A stretch of 62,466 nucleotides of DNA, counting the filler, from Dugesia japonica (lineage: Eukaryota): NCBI GenBank assembly GCA_001938525.1. It is 4 parts of 4 records of this genome, joined end to end, with 100 filler letters (N's around TTAATTAATTAA, not from the genome) between each part and the next. Parts side by side here need not be neighbours in the genome. Positions count along the whole stretch, not along the records: positions 18,571 to 40,060 come from MQRL01572306.1; 3 more parts are not named here. One strand, 5' to 3'. The position numbers and the translations under genes were made by a program. Positions 19,083-38,823 of the stretch are shown piece by piece. The notes under the pieces are model-generated. The model searched no databases. It saw nothing but the letters and a program-made list of their open reading frames with translations, and was not told where the DNA came from. Each line of letters begins with the position of its first letter. Within the stretch, counting starts at the first letter, position 1.

Positions 19083-20561
19083 ATGAACAGTCCAACTGGT
19101 ATATCAGATAATCACGTAGAACTATCGGATAGCCGAAATGAAATGCAAAATGACGTAAAGAAATTTAATGTTAGCGAAAATAAGATCAAATTGTGCAATG
19201 TATTATCGATTTGGCATGTGCTAGTACTACTTGGAACTGCATTTGGTACTTTAATTGAAGGACTAGTCCCTCATAGTTTTGGAACTTTGATAGCTCACTT
19301 TAAATCGATAAATAATACTGAATATCCTTCTTTCTATAGTGCATCTCAATTTCAGTTAAACTGGTTACCAGCTTTATCAAGTGCATTTCCTAGTATTTTA
19401 TTGCCAATTTTTGTTATAATTGTTCAAAGATATTCAAAGTTTTATCAAGTAGTCTCCATTTTCGGTTTCTTACTTGTAGCATTAAGCTGTTGCTTAAGTT
19501 CGTTTGTAACGACTTGGCCAATCTTGTTCATAACATACAGTATAATTTATTCAGTTGGTGCTTCTCTATTTCTATCAGTCGTAATAATTATCACTGCTGA
19601 ATACTTTCCCCTTGAACACAAATGTCACGTTTTAGCAACAAGTCTCTATCAAATTGGTTATCCTCTTGCTGCATTGATTGGAAATCCTATCCTCGCTAAA
19701 TTAATTCAAAAATATGAATGGCAAGTTTCATTAAGAATTATAGCTGGGATACAAACAGTGCTGGGTGTGACGATTTCTTGTTTTATGAAACCTTTGTTTA
19801 ATAAAGGTATTTTCAATAATAATAATAATAGTAATAATAATTGCAATACTAATTATGATTGTCAAAACGACGATTATGATTCAGCAAATGGGAAAACAAA
19901 TGAAGGAGTACCATGTAATAATAGATCTTTTTCATCAATGATTTTAAGTAGTTTAACTTCTAAATTTCAAATTTTTACTTGGCTTTTTGGGAAATACATA
20001 AATTATATGTGTTGGTATGGTTTGAGAACAAATGTAGTAACATATCTAGTAAAGTCCACATCGTTTGGATTGACAAATTCTGCCTCGTTGATGTCTGTTT
20101 ACGCTGCATCAGAAATAGTTATAGCTATTTTAGCATCATTTTGTGGAGATTACTTTCGAGGGTGGCTGATTCCTATTCATATTCTTTCTGCTTTTCTTCT
20201 ATCAATTTTGACCGGAATTTATTTTGTAGTATTGAATAGTTATCTCAGTGCGGTTTTACTAATGATCGGGATTGGTTTCTCTATTCAATTATCATTAAGC
20301 TTCGGATATCCAGCTTCTGTTGAAGTATGGAGTTCAAAGATGGATATAAAAGTTGGATGGGTATTAACTAACGTTGCTGCAGGATTAGGTATAATCACTA
20401 GTCCATTAATCAGTGGCATATTAATGGATAAATCTGGAATGAAATCATTATTTTATGCTCAGTGCACTGGTTGGTTGTTACAACTTGTTTTATATACAGT
20501 TACATTTTTGATTATGAAATCAAAGCAATCGCCATCATCATATGAAAGAATTGATGAGTAA
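19083..20561 (+). CDS. MFS transporter, monocarboxylate transporter (SLC16)-like, 492 aa, single coding exon
   Basis: About 12 hydrophobic segments in a 6+6 arrangement with a central loop; SLC16-like W in TM1, LFITYSII, AEYF, YEWQVSLRIIAG, SPLISGILMD; splice acceptor just before the ATG. Confidence 0.88.
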   Translation: MNSPTGISDNHVELSDSRNEMQNDVKKFNVSENKIKLCNVLSIWHVLVLLGTAFGTLIEGLVPHSFGTLIAHFKSINNTEYPSFYSASQFQLNWLPALSSAFPSILLPIFVIIVQRYSKFYQVVSIFGFLLVALSCCLSSFVTTWPILFITYSIIYSVGASLFLSVVIIITAEYFPLEHKCHVLATSLYQIGYPLAALIGNPILAKLIQKYEWQVSLRIIAGIQTVLGVTISCFMKPLFNKGIFNNNNNSNNNCNTNYDCQNDDYDSANGKTNEGVPCNNRSFSSMILSSLTSKFQIFTWLFGKYINYMCWYGLRTNVVTYLVKSTSFGLTNSASLMSVYAASEIVIAILASFCGDYFRGWLIPIHILSAFLLSILTGIYFVVLNSYLSAVLLMIGIGFSIQLSLSFGYPASVEVWSSKMDIKVGWVLTNVAAGLGIITSPLISGILMDKSGMKSLFYAQCTGWLLQLVLYTVTFLIMKSKQSPSSYERIDE

Positions 20562-21376: not shown

Positions 21377-22707
21377 CAGTCCGTTTGAAAAGTCTGTTCG
21401 CACCCATGTAAATTCATAAGTCGATACGTATTTATAATTTTTTTTCAATTTGTTTTAGTAATGTAAATTGCAAAATATAGTAAATAATATTTTTAAAAAT
21501 GTTATAAATTTTTATTAAATATATATAATATTATATGACACATTTTAGATATAATGAATAATCAAAACGTCCTGATGAAGCACAGAATAATAATTGTGGA
21601 ATTGATGATGGAAGGGTATAGTACTTGATCAATAAAGTAAATAATGACGGACAGGCGTCATATTGATGTGTCAAAGCGTGGCATTCAAAAAATTGTCCAT
21701 AAATACAAGACCGAAGGAATGTATATGGATCGGAAACGCAGTGGAAGACCACTGAAATTATCAATAAGGCCAAACAGATTAATTCAACGCGTATGCCTGA
21801 AAAATAGAAGCATTTCGTTAACGGAAATAGTACGCACTTGTAACATTGATCGCATTCAACATGTGTCCAGATGCACAGTTCACCGCATTCTCAATAAGTA
21901 TGGATTAAGAAGTCATCCGGCTGTTAGCAAGCCGTTGGTCAATGATAAGCAAAGGAAAAGAAGATTGCAATTGGCGATATCTAAACATCAATGGGATGTT
22001 GATAGATGGGCACATGTTGTCTTCAGTGATAAATCAATATTTCGCACATATAATCATAGTCGCTCCCAAAGAATTAGGCGGTTTCAACATGAAAGATTAA
22101 GTCATATTTGTACTAAGAAGTTTATTCAATATGGTGTGCAAATCCATGTTTGGGGATGCTTTTTACGATTCGGTGTAGGCATATTTGTAATGAATACAGG
22201 GTACATTGGATTCTGCAACCTATCAAAACAAGATTGTCAATGAAATGGACGTAGTTGGAAAGAGCTTGGTCCTCCTTCTGCGTAGGTTCATATTGCAGCA
22301 TGACAATGCTCTTTTCCATCGATCTGCATCAACATTATCTTTTCTCAGTGAACGTCAAATCGATATATTAAATTGGACTGCAAATTCTCCTCATGCCGAT
22401 CCGATTGGAAATTTGTGATATTTCATAAAAATTTAAATGAATGCCTTGGGACCTCTGAATGCTGATGAAATATGGGCGAGTTACAAAAGATATTGGATAA
22501 TATACCCACTTCTTTATTTCGCAGACTCGTTGATTCCATGCCACGAAGAGTGTTTTCTATTATCAAGATGAAAGGATACCCAAGAAAATATTAATAAACT
22601 TACTATCATTTGTAAATATAATGTTTCTTTGTTTTCCATTGGCTTTTAAACGAATTTTCTGTAATTTTTGTAATTTACATAGGTGCGAACAGACCTTTGA
22701 AACGGAC
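21377..22707 (+). mobile_element. Tc1-like transposon, near full length, frameshifted transposase (21644-22594)
   Basis: TIR CAGTCCGTTTGAAAAGTCTGTTCGCACC after TA, mirrored at 22672-22707; motifs RSGRP, VVFSD, VWGCF, LQHDNA, WTANSP, PIGNL, SMPRR, GYPRKY. Confidence 0.93.
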
Positions 22708-23573: not shown

Positions 23574-26500
23574 TGTAACTTAAATATATTAAATCTATAT
23601 AATAAATTCTAGTCAAACAGCCACTCATTCACTTAGCTCAGTGATGAAAATTAAACGGCACTTCATACATTCACACACACTTATTTTATTTATTTCTCGT
23701 TTAACTGCATACACACTTGTTAATTAAAGAAATTAATATTAAGTAGAAAACATTTAAATATTAACTGGAGAAATATTTTTATTAATGATCCGATGAATAT
23801 TTCAAACTCATCTAACATGGTGGCAGCGGTAAACACCGATGCGATCACAGAGAAATCGTTACCAAAAATATTTTGCAGAGGTGATGATCTAAAAGAGTTT
23901 AGTAAACAGTGTGAAATATACTACGAGGCAAAGAACATCGTTATTAAGAAAGATCAGGAAAGTTGGATAACATGAAGATTTAATGAAGGCATATGCGAAA
24001 ACATTGAAGAAAGCGGTTGGGTATCGAGAGATATTGAGATTAGCTTTTGAAAGCAAGAGAGACGTAAAAAAAGATTTACGGAATCTTGTAAGATATTGAC
24101 GTGGTGAAGACCTTGAAGCGTTTCTTTAAAAAAGTGGAGGATTTGGTCGATAAATCTTTAACAAATAGAGCCCTGACGAAAAAAATACTCTTATCAAAAA
24201 TGCTAATAATTTGTGCAGATAATCATGCGAAAAAAGAGAAAGTAAAAGGTATCAAAGAAACGCTTTCGTTAGTTGACAAAATAGAGAAAGAGAACTTATT
24301 AACGTAATAAAGAGCTACGCGGATGTAACACGTGAAGAACGTACCGAAAAGAGGAGTCATAATATCGAGAGAGTTACGAAAAGAACAGAACCACGATTTT
24401 GGACATGCCAGAGTTATGGGCACACAGAAAGAGAGTGTCCAAATAAATTCACAAGTGGAATGGTGGAATTGCCCAGCAAAGGGCATTTAAGTAGAAATTG
24501 TGAAGACAAGAAACCACAAAAATGTTTTGGGTGTGATAAGATTGGTCAAAACATAAGGATGTGCACAAAAATCGGATGCGGTAGATGTAAACGACCGAGT
24601 CACAGAGTGGAAGAATGTTATTCGGGCATTAATAAACCTAGACTAGAAGAGAGAAGTTACAATTTTAAAAGCGGACAACAAACAAAAGATTGGAGTCGGA
24701 CAAAACCAATTCATGACATTCGAGAAGAGGATGATGATGAGAATGTGGAAATATTTTCTGCAAGCATAATAGAAAATGAAAATCCGAGAAGAGAACACAC
24801 AAAAAGCAGGACTCCATCAGTAGATAAGTTGGTCAGAGCCATTCATTAAACGAGATACCGTTTGATTATTCTCAAGTAACCAGAAAATGGAACGAGATTA
24901 GTAAAGTGGAAGAAAATGTTTACAGATCCCTGAAAAGAGAAAGTCTCAATGATGAGGAAGTTAACAAAGCAAAAATGATGGGAATAATCAAAGAGAAACA
25001 TAACATATAAATTTCGTATGATAAGATGCAAGGGAGATCTAACATTTCAGTGATGATCAAGAGTGAACAGCTTTAATGTTTGTTGGATACAGGAGCAAGA
25101 ATAAATGTAATGAGCATCAAAGGATTTAGTAGACTCGGAAAAACAATGTTATAGAAAAGCCATGAACAATTGCATTGCGCGAATAACAGGTCTTTGGAGA
25201 CAATTGGAAAGACACTTGTGGAAGTTAAAGTTTTAGAGGTGTGCAAGAAAGTAACATTTATAATAGTAGAGAAATTAATACTAGATCTAATTGGTGGAGT
25301 GGAATTTCAGAATATTTTTGGGTATCATCTTCAAAAGAAGGAGATCAAATGTTTGGGATACGTTATCAGTAAAGAAGGTGTCAAAACAGATCCAACTAAA
25401 ATAGAAGCAATTAAGAACTTTGGTAAGCCAAAATGCGTTAAGAAAATGAGAAGCTTTTTAAGAATTTGCAATTATTAAAGATTATTCGAAAAAANCTAAA
25501 TTGCTGGAACAACTTGGTAGTCGACCGACTAACAANAAGATTGAATGGGCGAACGAATTAGAAGAAGTTTTTAATGGAATGAAAGAAGCACTAAGGATGT
25601 CTCCAATATTATGTTTTCTAGATATAAATAAAGAATTTAATTTGAACACAGATGCGAGTTTCAACAAGATTGGTGCAGTACTATCTCAAAAGGATGACAA
25701 TGGCCAAGAAAGAGTAATTGCATATGGGTTACACGCAATGGCGAGTCTTGAGAAAGGATATTGTACTACGCGGAAAGAATTACTCAACAATTTACTACTT
25801 TTGTATTCATTTCAAAGATTATTTATATGGGAAGATATTTATTCTCAGAACAAACCATAAAGCTGTCACTTTTATGCTGAATACCAAGTAGCTGATTACA
25901 TCAAGTTTCAAACCTGGATTAATTATTTGCGCAGTTTAGATATAAAATTGGATTATAGAAAAGAATCTCTTCATACAAATGCAGATATATTGTCAAGGAG
26001 TAAATACGATAGATGTGCACAATGTCTAATGGCAAATGAAGATCCAAAAAGTAGAAAATTAAAAAAAAGGATGTTAAATACAGTAGATACTCGAGAAAAA
26101 CAAGGCAAGTTTGGTGAGAATGACGAGGGAACATGGATACCTGATGATAAAGTAGAAGAGCTTATAATGAGGATACACCATATTTTGTGTCATGTTGGAG
26201 CTGAAAAATTAGCAGCGTATATAAAGCATAAATATAACTCAAAACATTTGTGGAGCAAAGTACAAGAAGTTGTGCGAAGCTGTATAACATTGCAAAAAGC
26301 TAAAGTGTTGACAATAAAAAAGAAGGAAGAAAAAAAAGGCACAGCAAGCCAAAAAGTTTGAGTTGTTATTTATAGATGTGTGTGGACCACTGCCGGAGAC
26401 AAGAGATCAAAAAAATATGTTCTCGGTATAATAGATCAATGCAGTAAGTATGTAGCTTTGATAGTAATGACAAGACAAGATGAAGATACCATATGAAAGG

Positions 26501-30430: not shown

Positions 30431-30489
30431 CATAAAAATGAACTCAAATGAAACTCAAATAAGCCCAAATGAAACTTAATAGTGATTTA

Positions 30490-30522
30490 ACAATAATGAT
30501 AATAATAATGATAATAATAATG

Positions 30523-30565
<43 letters not shown>

Positions 30566-30652
30566 NNNNNNNNNNNNNNNNNNNNNNNNNNNNNNNNNNN
30601 NNNNNNNNNNNNNNNNNNNNNNNNNNNNNNNNNNNNNNNNNNNNNNNNNNNN

Positions 30653-30696
<44 letters not shown>
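30490..30696. repeat. (AAT)n microsatellite, partly N; others at ~18849-18912, 36190-36231, 38764-38926, 46225-46460, 48820-48883
   Basis: Seen directly in the sequence. Confidence 0.95.
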
Positions 30697-31413
30697 GCAG
30701 TAAACTACGAACTCTGAAAGTACATTGCATTGATTTAATTGATTTATATATTTCTTCCTTTAACATAACTGTATTATATTTACCAAAGGAACAGTGAACA
30801 CAACATAATTCATAATATTAAAACTTCTGTTACGTAGTAGTAAAATGCAATATGTTGGACAACCATAACAAACCAACAATTATAAGGATTTTTATAATAT
30901 TCCTATAAAGAACAATATAACTTTCGATATTATTGACTATGATGATATTAATAATAATTTATTTGTAATTTCATGATATACTATATTATTTAACTATAAT
31001 ACAAATTTAAATTATTTTTGAAATGTAGGTCAATTGTTTGTATAATTGTTTGTAATGATATTAACTAAAAATATTGTTTAATATTTGTTAATATATTTTA
31101 ATAATCATAAAAGAAATCAGATGAGGTTATAATTTTGTACAACACTGTAACTATCATTTTATATTATCTTGTTTTTATAAATATTAAGAGTAATTATTTT
31201 ATTGAGTTCATTCTAAAATTCAACTCCGTACATGTATATTATATAATTTTTTACATTAAAATTCACTGAAATAAACTATTTTTATTGAAAACTCGACAAA
31301 AAACACAAAATGATGAAAATAATAACAAAAATAACTATAAATCAAAAATAATACTAGATATTAAACAAAAATCAACAAAAATACGAAGTGAAACTTCGTA
31401 ATGATACATAAAT

Positions 31414-34480: not shown

Positions 34481-34583
34481 AATTATTATTATTAAATTAT
34501 TATTAATATTATTATTATTAATATTAATACTATTATTATTATTATAATTATTATTATTATTATTATTATTATTGTTAATTAGA

Positions 34584-35978
34584 ATGCATGAATCCAAAAA
34601 GGGGATTCAGACAGATAAAAATTCGAATGCGGTCAATAACGATATGTCAATTTGGCACTGGGTTATCATCACTGGAACAACATTAGGATCAATTCTCTCC
34701 GCTATAATTCCTCATAGTTTTGGAACATTTATAGCTAATTTTAAGTTATCGTTAAACACTACTAATAATCCGTCGTTTTACAATGCTACTCAGTTTCAAT
34801 GGGACTGGCTTCCTGCTCTTTCTAGTGCAATTCCATGCATGTTTATACCAATTTTTGTTATTGTAGTTCAAAAATTAAAAAGATCTTATCAAATGATTTC
34901 CGCCTTCGGATTTATTATATTGGCAGTTAGTTGTGCTTTAAGTTCATTGATCGAAACATGGTTTGTATTATTTTTCACTTATAGTTTTCTTTATTCAATT
35001 GGATCTTCATTATATTTAGCAGTGGTAATTATAATTTTAGCAGAATACTTTCCCATTGATCATCGATATCATGTGTTAGCGACAAGTTTATTTCAGATTG
35101 GTTATCCGGCAGCTGCTTTCATTGGTAATCCAGTTTTTGCGTCCGTAATCACGGAATATGGATGGCAAACGTCTTTACGATGGTTTTCTTTATTTGAAGT
35201 ATTATTTGGATTGGTTATAGCATTGTTAATGAAACCTTCGAAATATGAAGAGTTTTGTAGATATTCGGAAGATAAATCTGATATAACGTCGACTTCATTT
35301 CATGATGAAACCTTTTCAACAAGTAAACGATCGTTTTCAACAACATCTTTGAATTATTTTGCCACTACTTATGAAATATGGCCATGGTTATTAGGGAAAT
35401 TTTTTAACTATTTATGTTGGTATGGACTTCGTACAAATGTTGTTACTTATCTTGTTAAAACTTCATCTTTCGGATTAGAGAAATCAGCTTCTTTGATGTC
35501 GATATATGCGGCTGCAGAAATCATGGTAGCAATTACAGCTTCTTTAAGCGGTGATACATTCCGAGGTCAACTCATACACATTCATATTATTTCAACATTA
35601 GCCTTAACTATTCTGACTGGGATTTTTACAATTGCAATTACTAGCTTTTTGAGTGCAGTTATTTTGATGATATGTATTGGTATTGCAGTTCAATCGTCTT
35701 TGAATTTCGGGTATCCAACTTCAGCAGAAGTTTTAAAATATAAATTTGATATGAAAACTGGGTGGATTTATACAAATGTTGCTGCCGGTCTCGGTATTTT
35801 TATAAGCCCACTTTTTAGTGGAATATTAATGGATAAATTTAATGTGAAAGCTTTATTTTATGCCCAGTGTTTTGGATGGGCGACTCAAGTCATTTTATTT
35901 ACAATAACCTTGATTTTAATGAAATATAATGAAAACAAATCCAAATCAGACTATCAAGAAATAAGTTTAGTGGAATAA
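34584..35978 (+). CDS. MFS transporter, SLC16-like, paralog of 19083-20561 (464 aa from ATG)
   Basis: Shared blocks PHSFGT, WLPALSSA, AEYFP, HVLATSL, CWYGLRTNVVTYLVK, TNVAAGLGI, SGILMDK; acceptor TTAATTAG before the ATG; candidate 5'UTR donor GTAAGT at 33101. Confidence 0.88.
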   Translation: MHESKKGIQTDKNSNAVNNDMSIWHWVIITGTTLGSILSAIIPHSFGTFIANFKLSLNTTNNPSFYNATQFQWDWLPALSSAIPCMFIPIFVIVVQKLKRSYQMISAFGFIILAVSCALSSLIETWFVLFFTYSFLYSIGSSLYLAVVIIILAEYFPIDHRYHVLATSLFQIGYPAAAFIGNPVFASVITEYGWQTSLRWFSLFEVLFGLVIALLMKPSKYEEFCRYSEDKSDITSTSFHDETFSTSKRSFSTTSLNYFATTYEIWPWLLGKFFNYLCWYGLRTNVVTYLVKTSSFGLEKSASLMSIYAAAEIMVAITASLSGDTFRGQLIHIHIISTLALTILTGIFTIAITSFLSAVILMICIGIAVQSSLNFGYPTSAEVLKYKFDMKTGWIYTNVAAGLGIFISPLFSGILMDKFNVKALFYAQCFGWATQVILFTITLILMKYNENKSKSDYQEISLVE

Positions 35979-36479: not shown

Positions 36480-37488
36480 AGCTCAAGAGCAACAGCCATG
36501 AAAATATTTGAAGGTCCTGGTTTCGTAGATTTAATGAAGGTGATACCAGTCAGGAAGACAAATTACGTTCTGGAAGGTCATCGGTCCTGATAAATGAAGT
36601 TTTGTTGCAAGGTATTACACAAAGGACAGACACCAGCACTCTCATACTGGCTACTCAACTTAGGAAGTCTCAATCAACCATTGTTCAGCACCTTCACGAA
36701 CTTGGTTTTTGCAAAGAAACCCAGATTTTTTTGCCAGGGACTTTCTGATCAACAAGCCAAAAAGAGAGAAGAAATTTCCAAGAAATTGTTGAATAGTCCT
36801 AAAGATGACAAGTTCTGGAGACGAATCATAACTAACAATGAAAAGAGGATATATCTGAGATATTCTATTATCAAAGGGCAGTGGCTTCAGCCAGGTTAGA
36901 AGGTATCATTGGTAGCTAAAAATGGAAGGTTTGAACACAAGGTGATGTTATCCATATGGTGGAATTTTGAGGGTACTGTATTATGGGAGCTAGTTCCAGA
37001 AGGCCGGTCTGTGGATGGAAACCTGTATCTTGCACAATTGGAACGACTTTATGATGTCCTGGCCACTCGTTATCCAGATTTAATTGATAGATAACGGGTG
37101 TTTCTGCAGCATGATAATGCTCCACCCCATAACTCTAAAGTGGTAAAGTCTAAGTTAGAAGACCTTAGTGGAATCAAACTACTACCTCAGCCAGCTTATA
37201 GCCCAGACTTAACTCCATCAGATTATCACTTATTCCAGTCAATGAGTCATTTTCTGATTGGTGAGAAATTTGATTCAGTAGCAGATAACGAAAGTGGATT
37301 CCTTGAGTTTTTGCAGTCCAGGCCAACAGCATGGTTTCAGAAAGAAATCCAAAATTTAGCTGATAGATGGTTGAAGACCTTATCTAGCGAAGGAATTTAT
37401 TTTGATTAATAAAACTGTAATGTTTTTATGAATTTTTTTATATTTATTTTTAGTTCAAAGTGTCCGTGAACTTTAGACTCAACCCAGG
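36480..37488 (+). mobile_element. Mariner (DD34D) transposon remnant
   Basis: RSGRS, IITNNEKRI, KVMLSIWWN, LQHDNAPPH, PAYSPDLTPSDYHLF, GIYFD; frameshifts and stops. Confidence 0.9.
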
Positions 37489-38051
37489 ATTATACTAGTA
37501 ATTATTTTTAAATAATTCTTATAATACAATCAAATAAGGCAAGCAAAAAATTAAGAAAATAATGATTATCTTACTGGAAATTAATAACAGGAAATTCTCG
37601 TTTAATTAGATTACTAAATACGCATAATTACTAATCTTATTTGAAATTCATAGATGGCTGTCAGTTCATTCATAGATTTTATTTTAAAAATATTTACCCA
37701 AAACTAACTTCAGTAATGTTTTGCAATTTCACCCCAAAATTATTTTCATTCAAAAGATATGGGGGTGAAACAACAAATAGGTACACTAACTTCAATAATG
37801 TTAAATAAAATGTAATATGGATTTGAAGGAACATAAAATTTCGATGATTTTCTATAACTTATTATTATTTATGATTTTATAAATAAATTATAGCTGTGAT
37901 AGCCATTGATCAGTAATGATAGTTGAAATGGAAAATATCAATAACAAAGTTGGAATGGTTTTTTACTAATTCATCAATGCAAGAAAAGCCACATTTTTAT
38001 TAATACTTTATTATTAAAAAAAACTGATGTTGTTAATTCAAAGAATTAAAC

Positions 38052-38508
38052 TCATGTTGATTTAGGTGGCTTGTACCAGTCATAATAGTCATAAGGCATC
38101 CATAATGGTCTGTGATAACAGTTATCTTGAAGTACACCCTTAATATCTTTGTAGAAACACCCATTTCGTCTGCAGCAATTCTTTGCAAACATATTAAGAT
38201 ATGTATATATCTGACGTTTCTGTGTTCTCCTTTTAAAAGCTGGCGTCATAGAATTATCTAAATATGCAAATGTTTTTTAAATTTAATTAAATTTTTTAAA
38301 CGCAGAATTTACCAGATCTCTTTCGTTTCTTCTTCATAACGCATTTAAGAGCTCCAAGTTTCCAATGAGGCCTAGGTTTTAACTGTGGATCATCTCGACG
38401 AATACACCAGAACACTTCACCCCACATAGCATTTGTTTCATGAGAACACATGAAGATCGCTATAAGAACACATAACAACAAAATTTTAAAATTGAATAAT
38501 GATTTCAT
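38052..38508 (-). CDS. Divergent insulin/relaxin-like prepropeptide, 133 aa, exons 38508-38313 and 38257-38052
   Basis: Signal peptide; B-like chain C-X20-C; KKKRKR, short C-peptide, KRRTQKR; A-like chain CC-X4-C-X12-C. A 55-nt phase-1 GT..AG intron in the C-peptide joins both ORFs in frame. Confidence 0.75.
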
Positions 38509-38763
38509 TATTAAAATTCACAATTTATTTTCATTACTTTTATTACCGAAATTAAAGGTTTTTATATTTAATTTTAACACAACAAACCGAAAACTGGGTT
38601 AAATCCTGAAATTAACGGCTTCAGTTTCATATTTCAATCACAAATTTAATTAATACTTATTTTCCTGTTAACTTTCATAATTTATAGTTTTCCATTTGTT
38701 TTAATTAAGTTTTGTTCGGATTACTATTAATTATTCTAAAACAAATACGTAAAAAATAATTAA

Positions 38764-38823
<60 letters not shown>

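Follow-up and report, generated by a model that had tools for sequence, protein, structure and literature searches.

Introduction

Insulin-like peptides (ILPs) of helminths have been sought with motifs built on cysteine spacing, in which the B chain is represented by the published search motif C-11X-C (PMC3493385). Accepted variants of the A chain follow the pattern CC-3/4X-C-8/9X-C, together with the flatworm form CCC-X2-C-X8-C, and the placement of an intron and of processing sites between a two-cysteine and a four-cysteine region is regarded as a feature of insulin precursors (PMC3493385, PMC5391603). The gonadulins of arthropods, whose spacing is variable and whose sequences cannot be aligned, have been accepted as insulin-related on the basis of their cysteine layout alone (PMC7357564). 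In planarians, the prohormone catalogue holds one insulin-like gene, ilp-1 (PMC2953531), and spp-20, the only later addition that we found, gives rise to another peptide (PMC4825013). In a preprint of 2026 that lists 52 neuropeptide genes, ilp-1 is likewise the sole insulin-like name (10.64898/2026.10.10.758126).

Here we describe a gene located in a window of 62,466 nucleotides from Dugesia japonica (the window being the whole stretch of DNA that was analysed), on the 21-kb piece of it that derives from MQRL01572306.1. An earlier note made from the sequence alone had proposed that this locus encodes a highly divergent insulin/relaxin-like peptide. We find that the gene is real, expressed and under constraint, that it has apparently not been described before, and that it encodes a planarian prohormone in which a proinsulin-like architecture is combined with non-canonical cysteine spacing.

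Results

A compact two-exon gene is transcribed from the minus strand

An ORF scan of the window recovered two small reading frames on the minus strand, 38508-38296 and 38249-38052. Removal of 55 nt (38312-38258, GTAAAT...TTTAG) fuses them in phase 1 to yield a protein of 133 residues, identical to the one that the earlier note had assembled when it described a hidden two-exon gene with this intron. The exons have a GC content of 35-36%, as compared to 16% in the intron and mostly about 16-27% in the flanking DNA.

Parts of the stretch occur in 20 public sequencing runs from 11 studies, many of which contain only the share of words expected from the exons. Reads and contigs from four runs (X23, X24, X1 and X15) were mapped to the region 37800-38740. 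The joint 38257|38313, at which the 55 nt are skipped, is crossed in the raw-read RNA run X23 by 16 reads that begin at 15 different positions, and in X24, a stranded oligo-dT run, by 3 reads; a 345-nt transcript contig of run X1 carries it as well. A contig from the DNA-like run X15 is uninterrupted across 37800-38512 and keeps the intron, so that the spliced transcript which the earlier note had called for is present in the RNA and distinguishable from the genomic form. Depth over the intron is close to zero in the RNA runs, which contain no retained-intron reads, and the borders of the skipped segment, CT..AC on the plus strand, correspond to GT..AG on the minus strand. All first mates of X24 lie on the plus strand, as a result of which the RNA can be assigned to the minus strand (i.e. 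the outcome for a standard stranded library). RNA coverage extends from ~38535 to ~37992 with a pile-up of read starts at 38513, and it is bracketed by a TATAAA element and by AATAAA signals (Table 1). Taken together, the junction reads, the strandedness, the limits of coverage and the flanking TATAAA and AATAAA elements identify a compact and real two-exon transcription unit. An upstream ATG at 38532-38534 opens a 7-codon uORF that ends at a TAA stop before the main ATG; since most reads start downstream of it, at 38513, this uORF is probably outside the main transcript.

Layout of the encoded precursor

The first 27 residues constitute a predicted signal peptide, with cleavage expected after Ala27. 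This assignment is based on a hydrophobic core (residues 8-20, mean KD 2.9) and on a break in conservation at Ala27 (15/27 residues identical before it and 100% directly after it, relative to the only known homologue); small residues also occupy positions -3 and -1 of the presumed cut. Outside the signal peptide there are six cysteines, at positions 35, 56, 93, 94, 99 and 112, which produce the spacings C-X20-C and CC-X4-C-X12-C exactly as had been reported. Basic residues are clustered in five runs (RR37-38, KKKRKR59-64, KRR74-76, KR79-80 and RR95-96), and the precursor has no amidation signal. The glutamine that begins the A-like block and the 21-residue tail rich in Tyr, Trp and Pro, both pointed out previously, are present in the product, and the glutamine (Gln81) is retained in the homologue. 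A relaxed version of the A-chain motif, CC-X3-4-C-X8-12-C, matches only once in the six frames of the 21-kb piece, at the A-like block, as compared to 0.03 matches expected by chance.

Table 1. Features of the prohormone gene and of its neighbourhood, with positions counted along the whole window; fractions are residues identical to the relative P0001.
Feature	Position	Strand	Basis or remark
Intronless MFS_1 (slc16a/monocarboxylate-transporter-like) ORF	19083-20561	+	Pfam; 51% identical to S. mediterranea Slc16a-7
Tc1/mariner-type transposase remnants (HTH_Tnp_Tc3_2, DDE_3)	21644-22418, 36594-37409	+	Split over several ORFs
LTR-retroelement pol remnant	24460-26361	+	RT RNase H-like and integrase zinc-binding domains in separate short ORFs
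Intronless MFS_1 ORF	34572-35978	+	Pfam; 63% identical to S. mediterranea Slc16a-7
AATAAA poly(A) signals, one at 38012-38007 and one at 38001-37996	37996-38012	-	Pattern scan; RNA coverage stops within bin 37992-38023
Exon 2, coding part (from the second base of codon 66 through stop codon 38054-38052)	38052-38257	-	ORF, splice, RNA reads
Tyr/Trp/Pro-rich C-terminal tail, aa 113-133	38055-38117	-	15/20; no basic site between tail and A-like block
'A-like' block, aa 81-112, N-terminal Gln, CC-X4-C-X12-C	38118-38213	-	31/32
Exon-2 part of variable spacer, aa 66-80, ending in conserved TQKR	38214-38257	-	11/16 for spacer aa 65-80
Phase-1 intron, 55 nt, GT..AG	38258-38312	-	Skipped in X23/X24 reads and X1 contig; kept in X15 contig
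Exon 1, coding part (aa 1-65 and first base of codon 66)	38313-38508	-	ORF, splice, RNA reads
Polybasic KKKRKR, aa 59-64, predicted convertase site	38317-38334	-	6/6; cleavage predicted
'B-like' block, aa 28-58, Cys35 and Cys56, Pro-rich DDPQLKPRP	38335-38427	-	31/31; sole strain changes Q42D and L43I, in the Pro-rich stretch
Predicted signal peptide, aa 1-27 (MKS...ETNA)	38428-38508	-	Hydrophobic core; 15/27
Candidate TATA box TATAAA	38561-38566	-	Pattern scan; ~30-50 nt upstream of RNA coverage start (bin 38504-38535); putative promoter role

The remainder of the piece contains two transporter-like genes and several remnants of mobile elements (Table 1). The MFS_1 ORFs share the same orientation, lie about 14 kb apart and look like a local pair of paralogues; the second is listed from a TTG, its likely start being the Met at residue 5. 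Slc16a-7 is their best named relative, and they also match a protein from a Logan transcript at 52% and 66% identity, respectively. These identities place the window in a triclad planarian and rule out a Strongyloides-like nematode, an origin considered in view of the low GC content, the short TTTAG intron, the intronless MFS genes and a weak nematode match in the ESM Atlas. One Tc1/mariner remnant (36594-37409) is situated between this transporter gene and the peptide gene, and the fragmentation of the transposase ORFs indicates that the copies are probably dead. The LTR pol remnant is broken by frame changes and by single N's at 25495 and 25536, and long (ATT/AAT)n microsatellites at 38741-38823 and 30469-30766 adjoin N gaps. 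Overall, the piece is ~25% GC, falling to 13-20% between genes. A motif scan of the 21-kb piece found no canonical ILP neighbour.

A single relative defines two near-invariant cysteine blocks

Whole-protein database searches used the relative P0001 as query, the window protein being queried as its exon pieces and its spliced form analysed in scripts. An exhaustive phmmer search of 1.84 billion representative proteins returned two matches, P0001 and P0002, of which only the first is real. P0001 (UniParc UPI0006025DA7, unnamed) is a full-length relative of 132 residues with the same exon junction. P0002, a 618-residue protein matched over eight stretches, is a translated tandem repeat and was rejected as spurious. 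A word search with exon 2 gave no match, one with P0001 recovered only P0001 itself, and a metagenome scan contained no relatives; no record corresponded exactly to the window ORFs or to the P0001 and P0004 contigs, and an attempt at synteny with P0003 led to a single transcript contig of 1983 nt. With P0001 as the sole relative, the conservation described here rests on one pair of sequences.

P0001 preserves all six mature cysteines, the KKKRKR and TQKR sites, and the glutamine (Gln81) that follows KR. Along with the RNA reads, this comparison supports the proposed order of signal peptide, B-like block, basic site, spacer, basic site and A-like block, and the character of a secreted precursor. 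One element of the original description did not survive: the C-peptide of ~9 residues was bounded by KRR74-76, which reads QAR in P0001, whereas KR79-80 is retained. The conserved processing sites are therefore KKKRKR (59-64) and TQKR (77-80), the connecting spacer between them comprises 14 residues plus KR, and the nine-residue C-peptide is peculiar to the window copy.

Variation among strains was also available, as the RNA sequences in X23 and X24 differ slightly from the window and represent another allele or strain. The differences in exon 2 are all silent (4 synonymous, 0 non-synonymous), and the only amino-acid changes are two in the signal peptide (I9V and C21Y) and two, Q42D and L43I, in the Pro-rich stretch between the B-like cysteines. 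C21Y takes a cysteine out of the signal peptide. At 38382-38385, three substitutions fall within four bases and are fixed in X23/X24, replacing Gln42-Leu43 with Asp-Ile; this cluster could be a multinucleotide event, or could reflect relaxed or positive selection on the loop. A prohormone processed by convertases would be expected to show this picture, in which two blocks are near-invariant while the signal peptide and the stretch separating the conserved basic sites vary more freely.

The reading frame is short and its homologue is one sequence only, features that might also be found in a transcribed but non-functional ORF in which the motif had arisen by chance. This explanation is effectively refuted, and its probability is negligible, as the intron is spliced precisely with no retained-intron reads, the cysteine blocks are near-perfect beside a diverged signal peptide, variation in exon 2 is synonymous only, and the relaxed A motif has the low chance expectation given above. 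The two-exon planarian gene is real, expressed and constrained.

A KR followed by a conserved Gln is a classic arrangement for processing and pyroglutamate formation. Its presence at the start of the A-like block argues against the product being an uncleaved, single-chain secreted protein of another kind (gland, mucus or antimicrobial), in which the polybasic stretch would act as a cationic patch. Such a protein could bind through its Lys/Arg-rich stretch and its tail of aromatic and acidic residues, and the published peptidomes that we searched contain no peptides from the precursor; but the spacer is the least conserved mature segment (11/16, with flanks at 97-100%), as is typical of an excised connecting peptide, and we consider a secreted non-hormone protein quite unlikely. 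The missing peptides are also weak evidence in themselves: the supplements of PMC2953531 and PMC4825013 contain no fragment of the precursor, but large peptides joined by disulfides readily escape detection, and the animals studied may be of another species. The literature searched yielded no paper with any of six diagnostic words of the window peptide, nor any mention of 'ilp-2' together with Schmidtea, and the gene, absent from the planarian prohormone catalogues searched, is apparently undescribed.

An insulin-like layout, with no sequence match to insulins

Several properties of the precursor match the plan of insulin precursors. Its cysteines follow the order C, C in the B-like region and CC, C, C in the A-like region, with all six common to P0001; a 55-nt phase-1 intron, confirmed by RNA, separates the B-coding from the A-coding region and lies in the spacer; and at the level of sequence there is a predicted signal peptide and a pair of basic sites, with predicted cleavage, around a poorly conserved connecting peptide. 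Outside the insulin type, no animal hormone precursor is known to us that combines this cysteine order with processing sites and an intron placed exactly between the second Cys and CC. Within the A-like block, hydrophobic residues occupy the fourth and third positions ahead of CC, as well as positions +2, +5 and +8 counted from the third Cys. When read against the conserved positions in PMC12796670, these parallel IleA2/ValA3 and LeuA13/LeuA16/TyrA19 of insulin, with the last A-like Cys displaced by four residues, or about one helical turn.

Other properties depart from the family. The B-like spacing is C-X20-C in place of C-X11-C and the A-like spacing CC-X4-C-X12-C in place of CC-X3-C-X8-C, both outside the ranges that define ILPs (PMC3493385, PMC5391603). 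The residue after the first B-like cysteine (Cys35) is Ile, where insulins have Gly, and an amphipathic B helix is not apparent before the second, as the 11-mers at 43-52 have a hydrophobic moment of 0.1-0.9. It is tempting to speculate that DDPQLKPRP is an insertion, as taking it out of the B-like block would restore C-X11-C. Neither the exon pieces nor full-length or mature P0001 matched the Pfam Insulin family (PF00049) at E<=10. The PF00049 profile is known to miss divergent ILPs. Four phmmer searches of the PDB at E<=10, including each block alone, returned no insulin, relaxin or IGF chain. Comparison with described flatworm ILPs, which the earlier note had suggested, produced no significant similarity in the case of Smed-ILP-1: scores of local alignments with its B and A cores did not stand out from those of shuffled sequences (p 0.16 and 0.27).

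Structure prediction did not discriminate between these two sets of properties. AlphaFold generated a low-confidence model from a three-row alignment (pLDDT 40.3), and for residues 28-114 alone it again gave low confidence (pLDDT 48.5), with one helix at 78-97 and no B helix. Foldseek found 0 matches in the PDB, starting from a low-confidence AlphaFold model. The ESM Atlas model of P0001 has a pLDDT of 0.46, and ESM Atlas feature searches gave no usable match (a weak nematode match at 0.76). We regard these structural results as uninformative, and they do not count as negative evidence on an insulin fold with its A6-A11, A7-B7 and A20-B19 disulfides.

The principal alternative is an orphan prohormone unrelated to insulin, which would release a 31-residue peptide with a Cys35-Cys56 loop and a 53-residue peptide with two internal disulfides, its likeness to proinsulin being coincidental. 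All sequence-based tests for insulin were negative, the B-like block is Pro-rich and non-amphipathic, unlike the insulin B helix, and each block has an even number of cysteines (2 and 4) and could fold alone; moreover, planarians possess many lineage-specific spp prohormones (PMC2953531, PMC4825013). Coincidence would nevertheless have to account for the cysteine order, with the processing sites and the intron placed exactly between the second Cys and CC, and for an A-like hydrophobic pattern that parallels the insulin A chain, and accepted ILPs can be equally unrecognizable by sequence (PMC7357564). We see the unrelated prohormone as a tentative possibility of real weight. The precedent of the gonadulins, accepted on a six-cysteine layout alone (PMC7357564), keeps the insulin/relaxin reading open, and homology to the insulin superfamily, judged from layout and sequence, seems possible though somewhat doubtful. 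Thus, of the earlier claim that the gene encodes an insulin/relaxin-like peptide, the layout and the position of the intron are upheld, whereas family identity is not demonstrated by Pfam, the PDB, Smed-ILP-1, the spacings or the B helix. As no sequence test matches a known insulin, the product is an undescribed candidate hormone rather than a proven insulin relative; it is insulin-like in layout, the insulin label is a hypothesis, and for now we would not list it as a member of the family.

Discussion

Our data suggest that the gene encodes a small precursor of a secreted peptide hormone, belonging to a family restricted to its lineage. Following secretion and removal of the signal peptide after Ala27, prohormone convertases would cut after KKKRKR and TQKR, and a carboxypeptidase would trim the exposed basic residues. 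PC2 is present in planarians. The products would be a 31-residue peptide with two cysteines and a 53-residue peptide with four, and the N-terminal Gln of the latter may cyclise to pyroglutamate. In the mature form, these chains could be joined as a heterodimer through two interchain disulfides, with one intrachain disulfide, as in insulin and relaxin; a heterodimer built in this manner would probably work as an insulin/relaxin-type hormone. We regard a two-chain, disulfide-linked product of this kind as the single most likely outcome, at slightly less than an even chance.

If the gene did belong to the insulin/relaxin superfamily, as its second planarian member, it would represent a new structural subclass, characterized by a Pro-rich insertion of nine residues where the B helix begins, one additional helical turn ahead of the final A-chain Cys, and an aromatic C-terminal tail that may be Tyr-sulfated. 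It might then act as a ligand of the planarian insulin receptor or of a relaxin-type GPCR that motif and profile screens have missed. We put this forward tentatively and would not be surprised to see it fail.

Planarian body size, stem-cell proliferation and the germline are regulated through insulin signalling. Among 52 neuropeptide genes, ilp-1 is the sole insulin ligand named in the literature searched (10.64898/2026.10.10.758126; PMC2953531), and a strongly conserved, expressed precursor with a proinsulin architecture is therefore a candidate for an additional ligand, of an insulin or relaxin-type pathway, that can be tested by RNAi. Homology would extend the range of cysteine spacings that the insulin fold is known to accommodate, and would mean that motif searches based on spacing, such as those used for helminth ILPs (PMC3493385), miss members of the family. 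If it is not homologous, the gene would represent a new family of flatworm hormones with disulfides, which reached the same precursor plan by convergence.

Relation to known hormone systems

The closest described systems include Smed-ILP-1 (PMC2953531) and the schistosome ILPs (PMC5391603), which, like the window protein, are secreted flatworm precursors of ~130-140 residues with a signal peptide, a two-cysteine B region, a connecting region and a four-cysteine A region with adjacent CC, and whose coding sequence is divided into two exons between B and A. They differ in having the spacings C-X11-C and CCC-X2-C-X8-C, whereas the window protein has C-X20-C and CC-X4-C-X12-C with no triple Cys. 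It also has a much shorter spacer and a 21-residue tail, and shares no detectable sequence similarity with them.

In comparison with relaxin, the window protein has no evident RxxxRxxI/V motif in a helical B segment, and a nine-residue Pro-rich stretch interrupts the expected start of the B helix. There may be some local resemblance to human relaxin-2, whose A chain begins with pyroglutamate followed by a Leu-Tyr-Ser-x-Leu-like helix ~nine residues before CC, possibly similar to QIYTYL...CC in the A-like block. Likewise, the Trp-x-Glu-Glu-Val stretch before the first Cys of the relaxin-2 B chain may resemble MWGEVFWC in the B-like block. With relaxin and the arthropod gonadulins (PMC7357564), the window protein shares a six-cysteine layout as its main mark, a divergence that evades profiles, and variable spacing, and some of these hormones also have C-terminal extensions.

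Finally, the planarian spp prohormones (PMC2953531, PMC4825013) are similarly restricted to their lineage, with a signal peptide, basic sites and no homologues outside flatworms. Their products are mostly short, linear and often amidated peptides, whereas the window precursor is built around two long cysteine-bearing blocks.
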